64,000 nt of DNA from Phaeosaccion multiseriatum. Lineage: Eukaryota > Protista > Ochrophyta, other classes. The translations under genes and the position numbers were made by a program. The notes beneath the pieces are model-generated. The model was not told where the DNA came from, searched no databases, and saw nothing but the letters and a program-made list of their open reading frames with translations. The stretch is taken from positions 186,001-250,000 of the forward strand of contig OZ218962.1 of the NCBI GenBank assembly GCA_965112735.1, written 5' to 3'. The first letter of the stretch is position 1, and every line of letters begins with the position of its first letter. Shown here piece after piece: positions 10,266-59,668 of this stretch.

Positions 10266-11433
10266 TGTGCAGATGGCGACCTGCGCACTGCACAGGCATA
10301 CATCCAGCAATCCGGAGGGAGTTGGACCAACTTCGGAAGAAGCACCTGCTCTGTGACGTTCGACAGCTGGTCAAGGTGCTCTGTCTCCGGTAAGTGCACT
10401 CACCCGCACTCTCACTCACTCACTCACTCACTCACTCACTCACTCACTCACTCACGCACTCCGTCACTCATCCACTCACTGACTCACTGCCTCACTCACT
10501 CACGGTTACCCACTCCCTCACTCGCACTGACTATTCACTCACCCCTCCCCTCACCCACTCACTCACCCACCCACTCACCCACTCACCCACCCACTCACCC
10601 ACGCACCATCGCACCCACCCTTCCCGAAGGTGTCATCACCGACGCCAGCAGACCGATCAACTTTGGCATTGCGGCAGGGGCTAATACCGACCACATGCTT
10701 GTGGACTCCGCGCTCCTCGTGACCAACAACCTCCTGGACAACCCCAACTTTGTAAGTGATGAAGCGTAACGTAACGCCTGGGTGGGTGGTCGGATGGGTG
10801 GCTGGGTACATGAAATAGATAAGCCCTCTCCTCTCTCTCTCACTGGCCCTTGCCTTGCTCTCTGTTGCTGACTCACTTTTATTTCCGTGTCACAGAGCGA
10901 GGGCCTGCAGGACTGGAGTACTTACGTGCACTCAGACGTGGGCGCCGTGCTGAGCTCCCCGAACCAACTCAACTTTTTCATTTCGGACCTGGGCGCCGCC
11001 CCTGTGACGTGGAAGGTCGCTGCATATCAAACGCTCTACAACGTGCGGCAGGGAGAGCGCTTCACCTTGTCGGTGGAGCTGTGGACCATTACCTCCGGCT
11101 CCGAGCGGTCGGTTACCCTGTACATCCAGCAGAGCGGCAGCCCTTACATCCCCTTCGGACAGACCGTGTGCACCGTTGTAAACACCCGCTCGCGCTGCAG
11201 TGTCACGGGCACGGTGTGGGACACCTCTCGCCCCGTCAAGTTCGGAGTGAGCGGAGGAGATTCGCTCAGGTGCGTGAGCAGTCCACGGCAGGGGGGAGGC
11301 AGCGGCTTTCTGTCGTCACCAGCTATCACCAGCCCATAATTCAGTTTCTCACCAACCCCCCCTCCCGTTCTGTCTCTTGTCGCTCAGGGACTTCGCCATG
11401 GACAATGCCATTCTGTCCCAGCACTACGAGTAG
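8282..11433 (+). CDS. Secreted GH16 endo-beta-1,3-glucanase (laminarinase-like) with two C-terminal CBM4_9-like modules
   Basis: Signal peptide MAPLYYGGLLLALVGL. GH16 motifs FSDEF, YTSARL, YGTVEVEARLP, GTWPGIWML and WPRSGEMDIM|EHVG (ExDxxE split by intron 8695-8886), then YHTYRLQWTPD, WPFD and FYLIMNLAIGG. CBM4-like starts NLLANPDFENGLSGW and NLLDNPNF|SEGLQDW. Stop TAG at 11431-11433. Confidence 0.9.
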
Positions 11434-15811: not shown

Positions 15812-16375
15812 TGGTCGACCCCTGACGCACTCTCGCCCACATTCTCGATAGCGCGCCTTTTTTTTTTTTTAATCTCTACCCCACTCCCGAGTCACTGACT
15901 CCACGCACTCAATCTCTACCCCACTCCCTGCCTGCCTCGACGGCCTCGACTCTCGAATCCCTTGCCTTACTACTCCCCTCACGAACCTCACTAAACTCAA
16001 CCATGATACAAGTACACACTATAATAGGGGGTTGAAAGGTGGAAAAAATGATAAGACCTCCCTCTCTGCTGAGTCACTCGCTGACTCATCTCACCCTCAC
16101 CTCTCACCGCCCTCTCTTCTCATGTTAGAACTTACATAAGGAGAAAAGAGGTTACACGCAAAAATATAAAAATACAACGCTTTTGCTGAGTCACCAGGTT
16201 TGGCGGGAATAAGTTAGGGGTATTTCCGGTGGCAGTTGGCCCCATCAGCCCATAAGTCAGCAGCCACCACCTGACTCCCTCTGACACATAAGAGCATTAA
16301 GAGAGAATGAACATAATCAAGGAAAGCGAAAGCATAAGGAAGTGTGTGTATCATCCCAGGAGCCCATAGGAAGAG

Positions 16376-53127: not shown

Positions 53128-54262
53128 TCAGATCTTCATGATGTCCACCTCCTTCTCCTTGATGACCTTGTCAATGTCCTTGGTGTACTTGTCCGTCAGC
53201 TTCTGGAGTGTGTCCTGCACGTCGAGGCTCTGGTCCTCCCCCAGCTCCTTGGCCTTTGCCGCCTTCTTGACCGAGTCCACAAAGTCTCTCCGGATGTTGC
53301 GGATTGCCACCTTGCCGTCCTCACCGAAGGCCTTGGCTTCCTTCACCAGCTCCTTCCTGCGGTCCTCCGTGATGGCGGGAAGGTTGAGCCGGATCACGCT
53401 GCCGTCGTTTTGGGGGCTGAGGCCCAAGCCCGCCATCTGAAGGGCCTGGTCGATGGCCTCCAGAGTAGTCTTGTCGTACGGATCCACCACCAGCTGAGTG
53501 GCCTGGGAAGTCTTGATGGCCGCTACCTGGTTGAGGGGCGTGTCTGCTCCGTAGTAGTCCACCATGACTCGGTCGAGAATGGCGGGGTTGGCCCTGCCGG
53601 TGCGCACCGAGTTGAGCTTCTCCTGCATGGACTCAACACTCTTGCCCATCTTCTCCTCGGCATCCTTGGCCAAAGACTTTGTGTCATAATTGCCGTCCGC
53701 ATCAACGCCCCCGCCTCCCTTTCCCTTGCCACCCCCGCCTCCCTTCTTCCCCTTGCCCATCTGGAGCACCACCCCTCCCCTCTGCCGGCGTGCTTGCTGA
53801 TGCTGCTTCCATGCTGACACGGAAGGCCCTGCGGCTCTGCTACACGCGCTCACACCGCTATTGCTGCTGCTACTCCTTCTGCATTCTGCTGCTGCGCTTC
53901 CCTGCTGCGGATCCCATGCAAAGGGGGAGAGAGAGCGAGGGCAGGAGAGGGCCGGGGGTGGGGGGAGTTCACGGGATTTAGAAAGAGAAGACGGAGGGCA
54001 AGACCAGGAGGATATCACACGGCATACACAGGCCAGATGCAACCTAAGCACTGAAGCCCAGCGAGGCCAGCACAACCTAAAAATCTGCCACAGAGTAGTT
54101 GAGCTACCAAATGCGCAACTTCAGTGAGCATGTTCTTCCATGTATACCTTCCATCACCCTCTCACTTACCACACTTCCCGACACACAGGACGGCACAAAC
54201 GCGCTCCCCTGTTGCACCAGGTTCGCGGCCAAGAGAACTACTCCACAGCACGCTGTCTTCAT
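53128..54262 (-). CDS. frr: Ribosome recycling factor, plastid-targeted (2 exons)
   Basis: Exon 1 MKTACCGVVLLAANLVQQGSA-FVPS, GT donor at 54169. Core VRTGRANPAILDRVMVDYYG, PQNDGSVIRLNLP, TEDRRKELVK, KVAIRNIRRD and QKLTDKY. Confidence 0.93.
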
Positions 54263-54364: not shown

Positions 54365-54444
54365 CCGTCTGATACACTATCCGCTATCGGCCGCGGCCGA
54401 TAGCGCGCTATGGAGAATGTGGGCGATAGTGTATCAGGGGTTGA
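54365..54444. mobile_element. Tiny MITE-like element: 13-bp perfect inverted repeats around a 24-bp perfect palindrome
   Basis: CTGATACACTATC (54369-54381) / GATAGTGTATCAG (54425-54437), with CGCTATCGGCCGCGGCCGATAGCG (54382-54405) inside. The right arm has a diverged inverted copy at 15815-15856. Confidence 0.5.
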
Positions 54445-54694: not shown

Positions 54695-54730
<36 letters not shown>

Positions 54731-54756
54731 TACACACACGAGGCATTGCTCTCTTC

Positions 54757-56115
54757 TCACGCCCTCAAGGCCGGCCCCTCCCCCTCGAGACCGTTGATGA
54801 GCAGCAAGAGGACCATGGAAAGACACGCACACGTCACGAGCGTCGGGGCCGGCCGCAGTCGGCGCAGCGGGTGGTCCTCCAGCAAAGTGGATGCGGACAC
54901 AGCTGGCTTGGGGGCCCGAGAGTTGGCGTATACGTAGGTGAGAATACCCGTCAGACACAGCAGCACGCCCACCACCTTTTGCGGCGTGACCTCAAAGTGG
55001 AAGATCATGCCCACCATGACTACCGTGATGACTCGGCTCAGGAACTTGACCACTCCGTGCGACACGGCGTCGAGGCGCTTGAGTACGAAGAAAGAGAAGG
55101 AGCTGTAGCACACGTGCATGACGCTGGCGATGAGGTTGGCGCGGTCGAAGAAGGCAGCCAATGACGCACGCGAGTACAGCATGGGCATGAAGGAAAAGGC
55201 CGCCCCGTAGAGGCAGAGAGTGTGGTACGCCACGCCCTCGCCGTGCATCACCCCTACGGCCTTGGACAGTACGGTGCGTGAGGCCATGAGCACGTTGCTG
55301 CAGAGGCAGAGGCACACTCCGAGCAGCGCCGTGGCCGAAGTGTCGGTGCCCTGCGACACCCCCCCGCCGGAGCCAGAGGAGGCGGTGGCAGTGGCCGTGA
55401 GCATCCCTATACACATGACCAAGATGCCGGCCTTCTCCCCCGTGGAGAGGGCGTGCCTTGTCCTCATGAAGACGGAAATCATGGCCACAAACACTGGCTC
55501 TGCGGCGCGCACCGTGTGGGTCAGGGCCGGCGCCACAAAGTCGGTTGACCACATGGTCAGGCAGTGGCCGCTTGCGTTCATCAGTGCCGCCGCGAGGATG
55601 ATGGCCCTCCTGTTGCTCGAGCCCTCCTCTCTCTTGCCGCCGCCGCCCGCTGCCCCTGCCCCGTCCCGCAGCCTCGCGTTCAGCCACGTTAGGCCTTGCC
55701 AACCGAGCCCCACCAGCGCGCCCGTGACCATCTGAGAGAAGACCAGGCTGGCCGCGGGCAGGCCGTTGTTGAGGGGCACCTTGTTGTAGACCTGTGTCAC
55801 CGCGCTGGACAACCACCATGTCAGCGTCGCCGCCACCAGCACGAGGCCGCTCCCAACAGGGGGCCGGGGGAGGGGCGCTCCTTCGCCGTGGCTTGCTGGC
55901 TGGTAGTGAGACCCCCCAACGGCGTCCGAGCTTTTACCCACTCCCCCCGAATACGGCGCGTGGCCTGCCCCTGCCCCCTCCTCCAACTCCTTTATCCCAC
56001 CTCCTTGACTCATTCGGCGGTGGTTGAGGAGACCCTCCCCTTCGCCTCCCCTGCTCTCGTCCTGCGGCAGCCCCTGCTCCACCAGCTCTACCTCTACACC
56101 CCCTTCGCCTGCCAT
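54757..56115 (-). CDS. TPT/SLC35E-family (DMT superfamily) phosphometabolite or nucleotide-sugar transporter with no plastid presequence
   Basis: Intronless 452-aa ORF with ~10 hydrophobic segments. Motifs VYNK, THTVRAAEPVF, SNVLMASRTVLSK, YSSFSFFVL and SHGV...SRVITV. Confidence 0.85.
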   Translation of the reverse strand: MAGEGGVEVELVEQGLPQDESRGGEGEGLLNHRRMSQGGGIKELEEGAGAGHAPYSGGVGKSSDAVGGSHYQPASHGEGAPLPRPPVGSGLVLVAATLTWWLSSAVTQVYNKVPLNNGLPAASLVFSQMVTGALVGLGWQGLTWLNARLRDGAGAAGGGGKREEGSSNRRAIILAAALMNASGHCLTMWSTDFVAPALTHTVRAAEPVFVAMISVFMRTRHALSTGEKAGILVMCIGMLTATATASSGSGGGVSQGTDTSATALLGVCLCLCSNVLMASRTVLSKAVGVMHGEGVAYHTLCLYGAAFSFMPMLYSRASLAAFFDRANLIASVMHVCYSSFSFFVLKRLDAVSHGVVKFLSRVITVVMVGMIFHFEVTPQKVVGVLLCLTGILTYVYANSRAPKPAVSASTLLEDHPLRRLRPAPTLVTCACLSMVLLLLINGLEGEGPALRA

Positions 56116-56770
56116 TCTCTCCAGCTGTTCTCCCGCGAGGGCTCGCTCAACGGCTGTTTCCTCTTACTGACGAGAGGTGCTGTAGAATACGAGCAACGGC
56201 CACATAAATGGAGGGCCCACCGCCTCGAGACAGCGCAGCAGCTTGGGGGGTCTCACGCACCCTTAGTGGTCTGGTTTCTCTTCTCCAGCGAGCTGCACAG
56301 CCTCAAGAGCAGAAACTATGCCAATTTCTCAGGTCTCTTAAGACAAAAAACGTACGGCGCTATTGTTCGGTGCGTGTCAGCTCGTATCTACGGCCCGGTG
56401 CAACTCACAGTCGCTTCCAGCACTCCCTGACGCTACTGACTACACTTTCTCTCCCCAAGCTCCTTCTTTCTCTCCTTATTGCAGGAAAATAGGGAGGGGA
56501 AAGGAAGGGAAGGAAAGTTTTGGCTCATATACCTCCAAATCTCTCTCTTTCTGCTACTTTTTTCTCTTTGGCGCCAACCGGGCAGCCTGATTACTGATTC
56601 TGACCGGCGCACACTGTAACCTTGTCCAGCCCCGACTATCTGCGTACCATACGTTGTAGTTTTGTCATTTATGTACAAAAAAAACCTCCCTCTCTATCCG
56701 GCAAAATTGGGCCGCAGGCACCTCCACCCACCCTGACACCATACAACCAGCCAATCAACCAATCCATCTA

Positions 56771-59668
56771 TCACATAATCATGGAGCAGAAGACACAAAA
56801 GTCGTTCAGGGTGTGGTAGCGCGCGGTGTGCGGCTCGCTCTTCTCTCCGCTGCTTACGGCCCCTCTCTCCTTGTCGGTCAACCGCACTCCAAGCACGCTG
56901 CTCGAGGCCAGGCCAGCGCGGAACTCCTCCTGCGTCTGCTTGGGTCCAGTAGGCACATCGAGGAGGCCCACTACCTGGTTGGACACCCAAGGACACCCCG
57001 CACCTCCTCCCCCTCCCCCTCCTTCCCGGAGATCAGGAGCGGCCGTTGTTTCGCACTTCATCTCCCCAAGTGCGCGCGAGAGCCCTTCCCTCCCATCCTT
57101 CTCCAGCTGCAAGGAGGCCGCAACCGACGCAAACTTCTTCTCTTCCGAGGCCCTGAACAGCAGCAACTCGCCCTTCCCCTCGGCCTCAGTCGTCACAACA
57201 AGGGAGCCGTAGCCTCCAAGGTAGGCCGAGAGAAGCACTCCCTCACCCACGAAGGTGCCTCCAATCGAGCTCAATGCCCACAGGGGGAGCAGCTCCAAAG
57301 CCACTGTGCGGCCCAAGTCCGCGTCTACATGGACCACAGAGGAGACACTGCCTCTCAGGCCCTTGTGCCAGTCCTTGGCGGGGCGGGTGGGGTGGTGGCG
57401 AACGAGCTCAACGTCGTAACCGCACTCCCAAAAGATGTGCATGGCCGACTCAGGCAGGGAGGTGGAGTGCACAAGCACCGTGGCCTCGGGGTGGTGATAT
57501 AGAATGCTCTCCACGCTGCGCCGGCTCAGGGGGTCCATCTCCGGACCCTGTCCTTCGCTCATGACATGGAAGAACTCCCCGTAGCCAGAGCGGGGCTGCC
57601 CTGAGTTGCGCTCCACGAAAGGCACAATGCCGAGCTTGAGTCCAGCGCTTCTGACGCTCTCTTGCATCCTAATTCGGGCCCAAAACGAAGCGCGAAACCT
57701 ATCCCGCAAAAAGTTCTGTGGGTTGGGCGGCGGCGTGTTGCCGTTGAGGCCCCAGATGGGGTCGTCGTGCCCTTGGTAAGGGGCGCGCGTCTCGTCCATC
57801 CAGTTCCAGGTCCCGTCCTCGGCCTTCCTCAGTGTGTGGAACAGCGGCAGCAAACCGGACAGTCGCCCCGGGGCGTTGATGTTGCCCGGGTCGACAAACA
57901 TGATGGGTGTACCCATCGCCACGCAGGGTAGCGCCACGTGTATTCGCGTGGTGATGACGAGGCGGGCCCTCCCGCGCTCCTGCAGCAGTTGGTGCACCAT
58001 ATGCCATTGATCGTGCGGTGTGAACCGAGGCATGTTTGGCAGCCACTGCTTCATGTACTCGGCCGTGTCCATAATCTCCTTGGGTAACAGCTCTTCCTGC
58101 TCGGCCTTGCTCATCATCTTGAGCAAATCGACGTTGTATACATTGTTGGTCCTCTCCGCGCCGCGGGGTAGCGCGCGCCTGAAAGTGAGTGTCATACACG
58201 CGCTCATGTAGGCCTGCACCCCCAGCCCTTCGAGGAAGTCACGCGTGTCCGTATCTCTGGCTCCTACGGGCCCATACCCCTTGTTGTACTGCTTCAAGTA
58301 CGACACCATGTCTGCCTTGGCGAAGGTCGAGTCTGCGGCGCCGTGGCTGTGCATGGCCAGGAGAAGCGGGTGGGTGAAGCGCGGGCTGGGGGGGAACTCC
58401 TGCTCGGTGCTTGCCCACCATGCGTTCATGAACATGGTCACGTTGGTGAGATCCTCTCGCCCGGCGATGGGCGATCTCCCGACGTGGTCTCTGAAGATAA
58501 AGTCGTCAACGTACCTGCACAGCGAGAAGCAAGGAGATGTTGCTCAATCAATCAATGGACATGTATTTGTGCGTGATCATCGGAGGAGGAGGAGACAGGG
58601 GGTTGGTTGTTCCCTCTCGGACTATACAAGAGAGAGGGGAGAGGCGGCTATTAGCTCAAGACAAACCAAACACAGAGAGACAGATGTACCAAGATGGCAG
58701 CAAGCGTCACGCGACTTGCTTGACTTACGGGAGGAACTGGGTGGATGCCATCGACTGCGTAGGATCTCCCAGGTTGGTCAAAGGCATGTAATCCATCACG
58801 CAAAACTGCTCTCCTCCCACCCCCCCGGTGGCCGGCTTGGGGGCGGAGAACGACCCGGAGATTTGGGCCTCCACGTTGCCCACTTTGTTGCCGGGGGAAG
58901 ACGCCCCCCACTTCTTTGCCACGGCGCGCAGATCAACCTCCAAGAGCTTCTTCCCGAGTTTCTCAGTATCCTTCTGGAAGAAGAAGAAGGCGTCCGAAAA
59001 CGCGTGCATCAGCCCGGCCAGCGCTTCGCTATCCTTCTTAAGGCACACAGTGTCAAGGGGCTTGCGAACGCCGCGTCGTCCAGAGACGCCCAGTCCGCCC
59101 CGCCCAGCGCAAGCCCAACATCAATCCGCTTGGTAGGAACGAGCGAAGGATCCACCGCCACCCCGCCGAAGCGCAGCAGCAAGCACATTACTACGGCATG
59201 CTGAATGTGTTCCTCAAACGCCGGCCCCGTGCGAAGCTTGTGCAAGAGGTTGTTGTGCATCCACGATTCGAGGGGGGTGTCCTCTGCCACTTCATGCACA
59301 CGGAGAGGAGCCACGGTCACCCCGGAGATACTCCCGGCACGCTCTTCGCAGCCAATGGTCCCACAGAACACGATAATGGGCGATGCCCGATTCAGCCTCA
59401 CCAGTGCCTCTACGTTGCTCGCCTCCCTCTCTCCGAAGCCACGCTCCTGCGAGCTCACCACCACTATCTTGTCAGGGGAGCTCAGGATCCCGCTTATGTG
59501 ATCACGCTGAAGCACTGGAGGCGGTGGTGCTCCAGGGTACGCCGCAACCGTCAACCGCCCTGTATCAACGCCAATATCCTCCGAGCTGCTGCCCGTGCGT
59601 GTAGCAAAGTAAAACGCGAGCATCAGCATGCAACCCACCACGCCTCTCATCACGTATATGGGTCTCAT
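56771..59668 (-). CDS. Type II membrane polysaccharide pyruvyltransferase-family protein flanked by two degenerate GT32-like modules; apparent 2-nt frameshift at ~59044-59049
   Basis: Signal anchor GVVGCMLMLAFYF. Motifs NLGDPTQSMA, MFMNAWW, PVGARDTDT, SACMTLT and ARLVITTRIHVALPCVAMGTP. Intron ~58515-58728. GT32-like EDTPL...LLRFGGVAVD and RRSVESILYHHP...IGGTFV. Confidence 0.8.

Follow-up and report, generated by a model that had tools for sequence, protein, structure and literature searches.

Adjacency of a TPT-family transporter gene and a pyruvyltransferase gene in Phaeosaccion multiseriatum, and fusion of the two in other eukaryotes: a candidate module for glycan pyruvylation

Introduction

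What is understood of the biosynthesis of ketal pyruvylation in eukaryotes comes mainly from fission yeast. There the Golgi enzyme Pvg1p depends on Pet1p and Pet2p, TPT-like Golgi transporters of phosphoenolpyruvate (PEP); a review describes the information on eukaryotic pyruvylation as scarce. In this work we analysed a 64,000-nt stretch of contig OZ218962.1 of Phaeosaccion multiseriatum (GCA_965112735.1), hereafter called the window, whose positions serve as coordinates throughout. Within it a transporter gene of the TPT/DMT family (54757-56115) lies downstream of a pyruvyltransferase gene (56771-59668), both on the minus strand. An earlier note on this DNA had taken these co-oriented neighbours, about 650 bp apart, for a linked pair of donor supply and transfer; the gap is 655 bp, and the literature agrees with the fission-yeast precedent (Pvg1p with Pet1p/Pet2p) that the note invoked.

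As in Schizosaccharomyces pombe, a membrane-anchored, predictedly lumenal PS_pyruv_trans enzyme is paired with a carrier of the TPT family, and residues equivalent to Pvg1p D106 and R337 are present in the enzyme. Unlike Pvg1p, it carries two GT32-like modules, and it matches the yeast enzyme at profile level only (E 1.3e-5). The yeast genes are separate, whereas those of the window are adjacent and those of many other eukaryotes are fused; the tie between carrier and lumenal pyruvyltransferase that characterizes Pet1p and Pet2p is found here as genomic association, in the form of adjacency and recurrent fusion. With the plastidic phosphate translocators (TPT, PPT, GPT and XPT) the transporter shares the ten-helix DMT fold and the residues His185, Tyr339 and Arg363, but unlike them it has no plastid-targeting extension, possesses an eleventh helix and has a changed pocket. 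Golgi nucleotide-sugar transporters (Vrg4, the CMP-sialic acid transporter, SLC35) have the same fold, with cytosolic termini expected in both cases.

Results

Fusions of transporter and pyruvyltransferase

The transporter core was compared by exhaustive HMMER search with 1.84 billion representative sequences, giving 122 matches at E<=0.001 (17 of them at E<=1e-10), which are referred to below by P numbers. In the best match (P0006; 1387 aa, 43% identity, E 1.4e-46) TPT forms the N-terminal domain and PS_pyruv_trans the C-terminal one; this protein and at least 14 others are fusions of transporter and pyruvyltransferase in a single open reading frame (ORF), on eukaryotic contigs and in both domain orders. 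The transporter precedes the enzyme in P0006, P0010, P0011/P0134, P0013, P0022, P0063, P0086, P0106, P0118, P0122 and P0177; the enzyme precedes the transporter in P0052, P0077 and P0172. Two of the fusions have a named source, the brown alga Pylaiella littoralis (P0172, 941 aa) and the sanchytrid fungus Amoeboradix gromovi (P0118, 688 aa). Of the 11 matches with E<=1e-10 and a length above 300 aa, seven have the enzyme fused to them or next to them. The earlier note had set the absence of a recurring linkage as refuting its proposal; the linkage does recur, the closest relatives of the transporter being fused to, or directly followed by, a pyruvyltransferase. The window transporter shares its pocket motifs and its eleventh helix with P0006, and differs from P0006/P0128, P0013/P0177, P0063, P0118 and P0172 in that transporter and enzyme are separate genes in the window, the enzyme followed by the transporter.

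The fusions are not artefacts of gene models, an origin in gene calling being unlikely because they are single ORFs. Those of P0128 (4.4 kb) and P0063 (3.4 kb) are uninterrupted and have neighbours of typically eukaryotic kinds on their contigs (DHHC, GST, kinases, Kelch, a 7tm_3 receptor); a kinesin gene adjoins P0133, and in P0052 the end of the enzyme domain and the whole transporter lie in one ORF. In the second-best match, P0007, a 380-aa pyruvyltransferase ORF follows in the same frame after one TAA, in three independent assemblies. The TAA between the transporter and pyruvyltransferase ORFs falls within 11270-11291 of locus L004, and loci L005 and L006 are alike in this; the codon could be read through, lie in a tiny intron or mark a true split.

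Across the fusions the constant partner is the pyruvyltransferase. GT32 is absent from most of them, while P0063 and P0106 combine TPT, a canonical GT32 with its DxD motif and a pyruvyltransferase. Some further architectures were seen. P0006/P0128 (locus L001, 9886-14310) have two tandem pyruvyltransferase domains after the transporter (P0006 residues 490-860 and 1011-1376), and the 849-aa fusion of the P0013 cluster corresponds on other contigs to ORFs of 323 and 516 aa. P0018/P0184 (703 aa; ENA contigs of up to 41 kb), from the same transporter clade as the window protein, have a degenerate pocket motif and an eleventh helix followed, in place of the pyruvyltransferase, by a weak Methyltransf_24-like domain; P0008 (647 aa) ends in a 280-aa C-terminal domain in which no family was recognized, and P0068 (708 aa) joins a typical TPT domain (213 bits) to an alpha/beta-hydrolase domain downstream of it.

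Protein searches based on words, with either the full transporter or its core as query, gave no match, probably because low-complexity words filled the candidate list, and a feature search of the ESM Atlas returned generic DMT and nucleotide-sugar clusters only. A metagenome scan for further loci of the transporter's own clade (clade A, below) yielded three, all of the P0009/P0134 group. In a literature search of limited scope we found no description of a fusion between TPT and pyruvyltransferase.

The transporter and its eleventh helix

The main features of the transporter are as follows.

54757-56115, minus strand: transporter gene, TPT/DMT family, single 452-aa ORF (Pfam TPT PF03151, E 6.7e-19)
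55855-56115, minus strand: hydrophilic Gly/Glu-rich N-terminal region, residues 1-87 (translation and hydropathy; homology starts at about residue 88)
54934-55839, minus strand: ten-helix TPT domain, residues 93-394 (Pfam; alignment to GsTPT2, 5y78)
54787-54843, minus strand: eleventh transmembrane helix, residues 425-443 (hydropathy of the window protein and 17 relatives)

The match to PF03151 scores 68.8 bits (cut-off 30) and spans profile positions 3-290 of 291 over residues 93-394; EamA matched as well. Hydropathy of the first 87 residues shows no hydrophobic segment, signal peptide or plastid-targeting extension, in agreement with the view of the earlier note that a plastid presequence is lacking. 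The acidic di-leucine EGEGLL to which the note also drew attention (residues 25-30, 56026-56043) does match the consensus [DE]xxxL[LI], but so short a motif lends little weight to Golgi residence. The ORF is complete and all clade-invariant residues are present. An AlphaFold model (predicted local distance difference test score, pLDDT, 79; predicted template modelling score 0.79) has the ten-helix DMT fold plus an extra helix, which is modelled with lower confidence (pLDDT about 55-63).

This extra C-terminal hydrophobic segment, already noticed earlier and suspected of being the relic of a fusion, comes after a basic loop and ends just nine residues short of the C-terminus; phmmer alignments to P0128 and P0009 extend into it. 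In every fusion of the transporter-then-enzyme order the tenth helix is followed, 10-45 residues later, by a single additional hydrophobic helix, and the reverse-order fusions have one helix between enzyme and transporter. The eleventh helix of the window protein corresponds to this connecting helix, with which the suspicion fits. Nucleotide-sugar transporters of the DMT fold have cytosolic termini. Because of the connecting helix, the enzyme of the fusions and the transporter termini face opposite sides of the membrane, and if these termini are cytosolic, as in the nucleotide-sugar transporters, the enzyme would be lumenal in both domain orders. The match between P0063 and the free enzyme P0002 starts at P0063 residue 310, and because the eleventh helix of P0063 occupies residues 319-337, that helix stands at the N-terminal end of the match, in the position of a type II signal anchor. 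Judging from this alignment, joining a transporter gene to a downstream gene for a type II enzyme would need no new helix.

Ancestry of the two genes

A tree was computed from 34 TPT domains of nearly full length, with support given by the Shimodaira-Hasegawa-like approximate likelihood ratio test (SH-aLRT); in it the transporter sits in an 11-row clade (clade A; SH-aLRT 99) whose members are mostly fused or adjacent to the enzyme; the other rows are P0006, P0134/P0009, P0008, P0018, P0012, P0007, P0010, P0013 and P0014, the last being a shorter version of P0177, itself a fusion. Among the enzyme domains, those of P0006, P0013/P0177 and P0022 cluster together as one clade (support 100), and the transporters of P0006 and P0013/P0177 occupy the two halves of clade A. 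Since the enzyme domains of P0006 and P0013/P0177 group together, the trees suggest that the fusion is older than the transporter clade, and that the most likely ancestor of the unfused gene of the window is a transporter-enzyme fusion whose enzyme part has been lost. A fusion relic is the best reading of an eleventh helix followed by an early stop. A search 3' of the transporter stop codon found no remnant of a pyruvyltransferase domain. A similar natural form is P0009 (408 aa), which ends after the eleventh helix and is 83% identical to the fused P0134; no enzyme sequence was found within the 600-800 bases that follow it.

The enzyme of the window falls together with P0063 and with P0002, a free enzyme (support 97), and the transporter of P0063 belongs to another type of TPT, outside clade A. 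A simple split of a P0063-type or Pylaiella-type fusion was considered as the origin of the window pair and ruled out, its transporter being in a different TPT clade. The two lineages in the window pair, together with the reverse-order fusions, imply that the association of transporter and enzyme arose at least three or four times.

Substrate pocket

Compared by sequence with the PDB, the transporter matches one entry only, the red-algal triose-phosphate/phosphate translocator GsTPT2 (5y78, E 5e-5). Foldseek likewise placed 5y78 first and nucleotide-sugar transporters next (probability 1.00); in the fold comparison 5y78 reached E 3e-9 at 20% identity, as against about 1e-6 and 13-15% for the Golgi nucleotide-sugar transporters, which gave no PDB sequence match, although by template modelling score (TM-score) they are nearly as close as 5y78. 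Pocket residues were mapped onto GsTPT2 numbering by alignment to 5y78, and the columns were compared across the relatives.

55555-55569, minus strand: His185 equivalent, motif GHCLT
55495-55521, minus strand: Arg in place of Lys204, motif THTVRAAEP
55276-55296, minus strand: Met in place of Phe263
55099-55116, minus strand: Tyr339 equivalent
55033-55047, minus strand: K-x-x-S-R in place of N-x-x-K-R

The pocket thus keeps the equivalents of His185, Tyr339 and Arg363, and is changed at Lys204 (to Arg), at Lys362 (to Ser) and at Asn359, one helical turn before Lys362 (to Lys). In the clade alignment A2 the residues H113, R116, Y250, K270 and S273 (A2 numbering) are invariant. The pattern R / K-x-x-S-R(K) is common to the 11-row clade and P0022, with P0018 and P0012 deviating at the second motif; all other matches have the plastid type K / N-x-x-K-R, including the fusions P0063, P0086, P0118, P0122, P0106 and that of Pylaiella. 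The phosphate-translocator Arg, present in the window pocket, is reportedly missing from TPT homologues of the nucleotide-sugar type (KR as against KT, KD and KV classes). At the position of Phe263, most of the clade has Met, Leu, Ile or Val, P0134 and P0009 aligning poorly there; the paper on the GsTPT2 structures (5y78/5y79) describes a clash of Phe263 with the methylene group of PEP. According to the same paper the phosphate-binding residues Lys204, Lys362, Arg363 and Tyr339 are strictly conserved in plastidic phosphate translocators, which exchange strictly 1:1 with phosphate. This binding set is incomplete in the window transporter, where Arg363 and Tyr339 are kept and Lys204 and Lys362 are not. 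The three cationic side chains left in the predicted pocket fit a small phosphorylated acid such as PEP, which is compatibility and not proof.

The pyruvyltransferase gene

The gene model of the enzyme comprises the following elements.

59050-59668, minus strand: first coding segment, frame A, ATG at 59668 (ORF; tblastn to P0063 residues 372-486 and P0002 residues 84-161)
59603-59644, minus strand: signal anchor, residues 9-22 (ORF list)
about 59075-59419, minus strand: GT32-like module A, DxD replaced by D-P-S (blastp to the PF04488 region of P0106)
59009-59075, minus strand: frame-change zone (frame A stop at 59009-59011; P0063 homology resumes in frame B at about 59045)
58729-59048, minus strand: second coding segment, frame B, covering the last part of the GT32-like module and the first part of the pyruvyltransferase domain (homologue alignment)
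58764-58775, minus strand: N-L-G-D motif, in the second coding segment
58515-58728, minus strand: intron, 214 nt, GTAAGT...TGCAG (joined ...QFLP/YVDDF... gapless against homologues)
56771-58514, minus strand: last exon, rest of the pyruvyltransferase domain, GT32-like module B and C-terminal tail (Pfam PF04230; tblastn)
58253-58273, minus strand: GPVGARD motif, in the last exon
57923-57952, minus strand: TTRIH motif, in the last exon
about 57230-57520, minus strand: GT32-like module B, DxD replaced by G-E-G (compared with the PF04488 region of P0063)
56771-56773, minus strand: stop codon (ORF)

The short signal anchor that follows the ATG bears out the type II anchor described in the earlier note. 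From the last exon alone, the ORF 56771-58441 matches PS_pyruv_trans (PF04230) at E 3.5e-8 and 34.1 bits (cut-off 25.3); the N-terminal part of the domain is absent from this exon and is encoded by the preceding one. With the enzyme part of P0063 (residues 372-959) the enzyme shares 35% identity and a colinear arrangement, and the last exon matches P0063 residues 596-959 by tblastn at E 2e-54. A single-sequence PDB search missed Pvg1p, whereas a profile of 14 homologues matched its structure (5ax7). In that alignment the Asp of N-L-G-D corresponds to D106 and the Arg of TTRIH to R337, both proposed as catalytic in the Pvg1p structure paper; the Arg of GPVGARD is probably the counterpart of a further catalytic residue, R217, at a position outside the 5ax7 mapping.

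Two degenerate GT32-like modules flank the pyruvyltransferase domain. Their link to GT32 is BLAST similarity alone, to the regions of P0106 and P0063 that bear PF04488, and Pfam searches with the first segment, the second segment and the C-terminal part separately gave no family even at E 10. DxD is gone from both modules, while P0106 has D-A-D and P0063 D-T-D.

At about 59040-59060 the reading frame shifts by one base, with the similarity to P0063 running gapless from frame A into frame B. In a search for an intron that would explain the change, all 55 frame-restoring GT/GC-AG candidates had poor donors or cost conserved residues. Read evidence over the locus consisted of contigs from four genomic read sets of one sample, in which no splice joints were seen; at the frame change these contigs match the window with no insertion or deletion. 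The change may be either a recent one-base frameshift or an unusual short intron.

Neighbourhood of the pair

Between the enzyme stop codon and the transporter ATG lies the spacer.

56116-56770, no strand assigned: spacer between the co-oriented genes, 655 bp, with a probable short dispersed repeat at about 56586-56635

The contigs of all four runs break at 56586-56635 and depth is raised over 56424-56791, which suggests a short dispersed repeat; no second copy of it was found within the 64-kb window. Downstream of the transporter, a dispersed repeat of about 42 bp (54403-54444) has a copy at 15815-15856, and here too the contigs of all four runs break and the summed depth climbs to thousands; a (GT)n microsatellite (54700-54745) directly follows the transporter stop codon. 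Minority contigs of run X4 (about 10-13% of depth) lack 2 nt at 55359 and 1 nt at 55866, both within the transporter gene, and could stem from a minor haplotype, a diverged copy or error. The pair is flanked by genes unrelated in kind, namely a Crypton element and a gene for ribosome recycling factor (53128-54075, minus strand; Pfam RRF, E 1e-61), whose product has an N-terminal extension of about 150 aa and is probably targeted to an organelle.

Discussion

The analyses presented above lead us to consider it probable that the two genes of the window are a working pair for glycan pyruvylation in a compartment of the secretory pathway, most likely the Golgi, and that the transporter stems from a fused ancestor. 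In such a pair the transporter, a phosphate-translocator-like antiporter with both termini in the cytosol, would import PEP into the lumen, probably against the phosphate released by the enzyme, and the type II-anchored pyruvyltransferase would transfer pyruvate from PEP as ketals onto lumenal glycans. According to the title of PMC8615578, ketal pyruvyl transfer releases phosphate; since the transfer would free one phosphate per PEP and the exchange would be strictly 1:1, a PEP/phosphate antiporter beside the enzyme would be self-balancing. Of the linked donor-supply and transfer pair envisaged earlier, the linkage is borne out by its recurrence; we infer PEP as substrate (with phosphate as counter-substrate), the Golgi as compartment, pyruvylated acceptor glycans, and the expression and intactness of both genes.

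Several observations weigh against a working pair. The frame change in the enzyme gene has no convincing intron, and the gene may be a recent pseudogene; among the runs that contain DNA of the locus all are genomic and none is an RNA run. Two of the three phosphate-binding cations of the plastid translocators are altered in the transporter (Arg for Lys204, Ser for Lys362), which leaves room for a different substrate. The transporter (clade A) and the enzyme (P0063 type) come from different fusion lineages, which means that the pair is not simply a split fusion, and no TPT gene lies within 10 kb of P0002, a free homologue of the enzyme. Finally, in the clade-A fusions an Asn aligns with the Asp of the N-x-G-D motif, and the catalytic competence of those fusions is therefore not assured.

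The most serious alternative, which we regard as unlikely without dismissing it, is that the module is decaying: the transporter would be the truncated remnant of a fusion and the enzyme a recent frameshift pseudogene, with no present pyruvylation by the pair, an ancestral coupling being compatible with this. It would account for the stop of frame A at 59009 where homology to P0063 continues in frame B, for the failure of all the candidate introns, for the reproduction of the frame-change sequence by independent read contigs, for the loss of DxD from both GT32-like modules and for a transporter that ends nine residues past its last helix. Decay sits poorly, however, with about 105 and about 580 codons that stay open after the frame change, with intact N-L-G-D, GPVGARD and TTRIH motifs, with a transporter ORF that is complete and keeps every clade-invariant residue, and with the occurrence of P0009 as a natural unfused relative that has the same helix and is so close to P0134. 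It is distinctly improbable, in our estimate, that the transporter serves the pair with a cargo other than PEP, be it a nucleotide sugar used by the GT32-like modules, some other compound that is phosphorylated or anionic, or phosphate for export only. The union of TPT with a canonical GT32 and a pyruvyltransferase in P0063 and P0106 speaks for such a cargo, as do the near-equal TM-scores of nucleotide-sugar transporters and the departures of the pocket at Lys204, Asn359 and Lys362; yet the partner that stays constant is the pyruvyltransferase and not GT32, both modules of the window are without DxD, the His185, Tyr339 and Arg363 equivalents are kept, and a phosphate translocator is the only PDB sequence match.

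That the genes are chance neighbours with unrelated functions seems to us very improbable. A single adjacency was seen in this genome, the flanking genes have nothing to do with the pair and the free P0002 has no TPT neighbour; against this stand the independent fusions of the two domain families, three to four at the least and in both orders, and the seven of 11 close, long matches that are fused or adjacent to the enzyme. We retain a working pair for glycan pyruvylation as the preferred reading of the locus.

What is new here is the physical linkage of carrier and enzyme, as adjacency in the window and as fusion elsewhere, together with a distinct clade of transporters with an eleventh helix and a rearranged pocket. 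To our knowledge, few proteins of the secretory pathway join a transporter to a lumenal enzyme. We suggest, with slightly less than even confidence, that the fusions make up a widespread and apparently undescribed bifunctional class, in which a PEP/phosphate antiporter, an extra helix and a lumenal ketal-pyruvyltransferase are joined, which has several separate origins (among stramenopiles, brown algae included, in a sanchytrid fungus and in numerous unidentified protists), which contains a clade with the triad Arg / Lys-x-x-Ser-Arg, and of which the window holds a split form.

The interest of the locus lies mainly in the fusion family to which it led. The fusion may serve as a sequence marker for candidate Golgi PEP transporters across eukaryotes, and its members are natural single-chain constructs for coupling donor supply to transfer; the altered pocket (Arg / Lys-x-x-Ser-Arg) offers a ready set of substitutions for the study of substrate selection in phosphate translocators. 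From the fusion one would expect pyruvylated surface glycans in ochrophytes, brown algae and early fungi. If the fusions do make up such a widespread class, glycan pyruvylation in eukaryotes would be far commoner than the few known cases imply.

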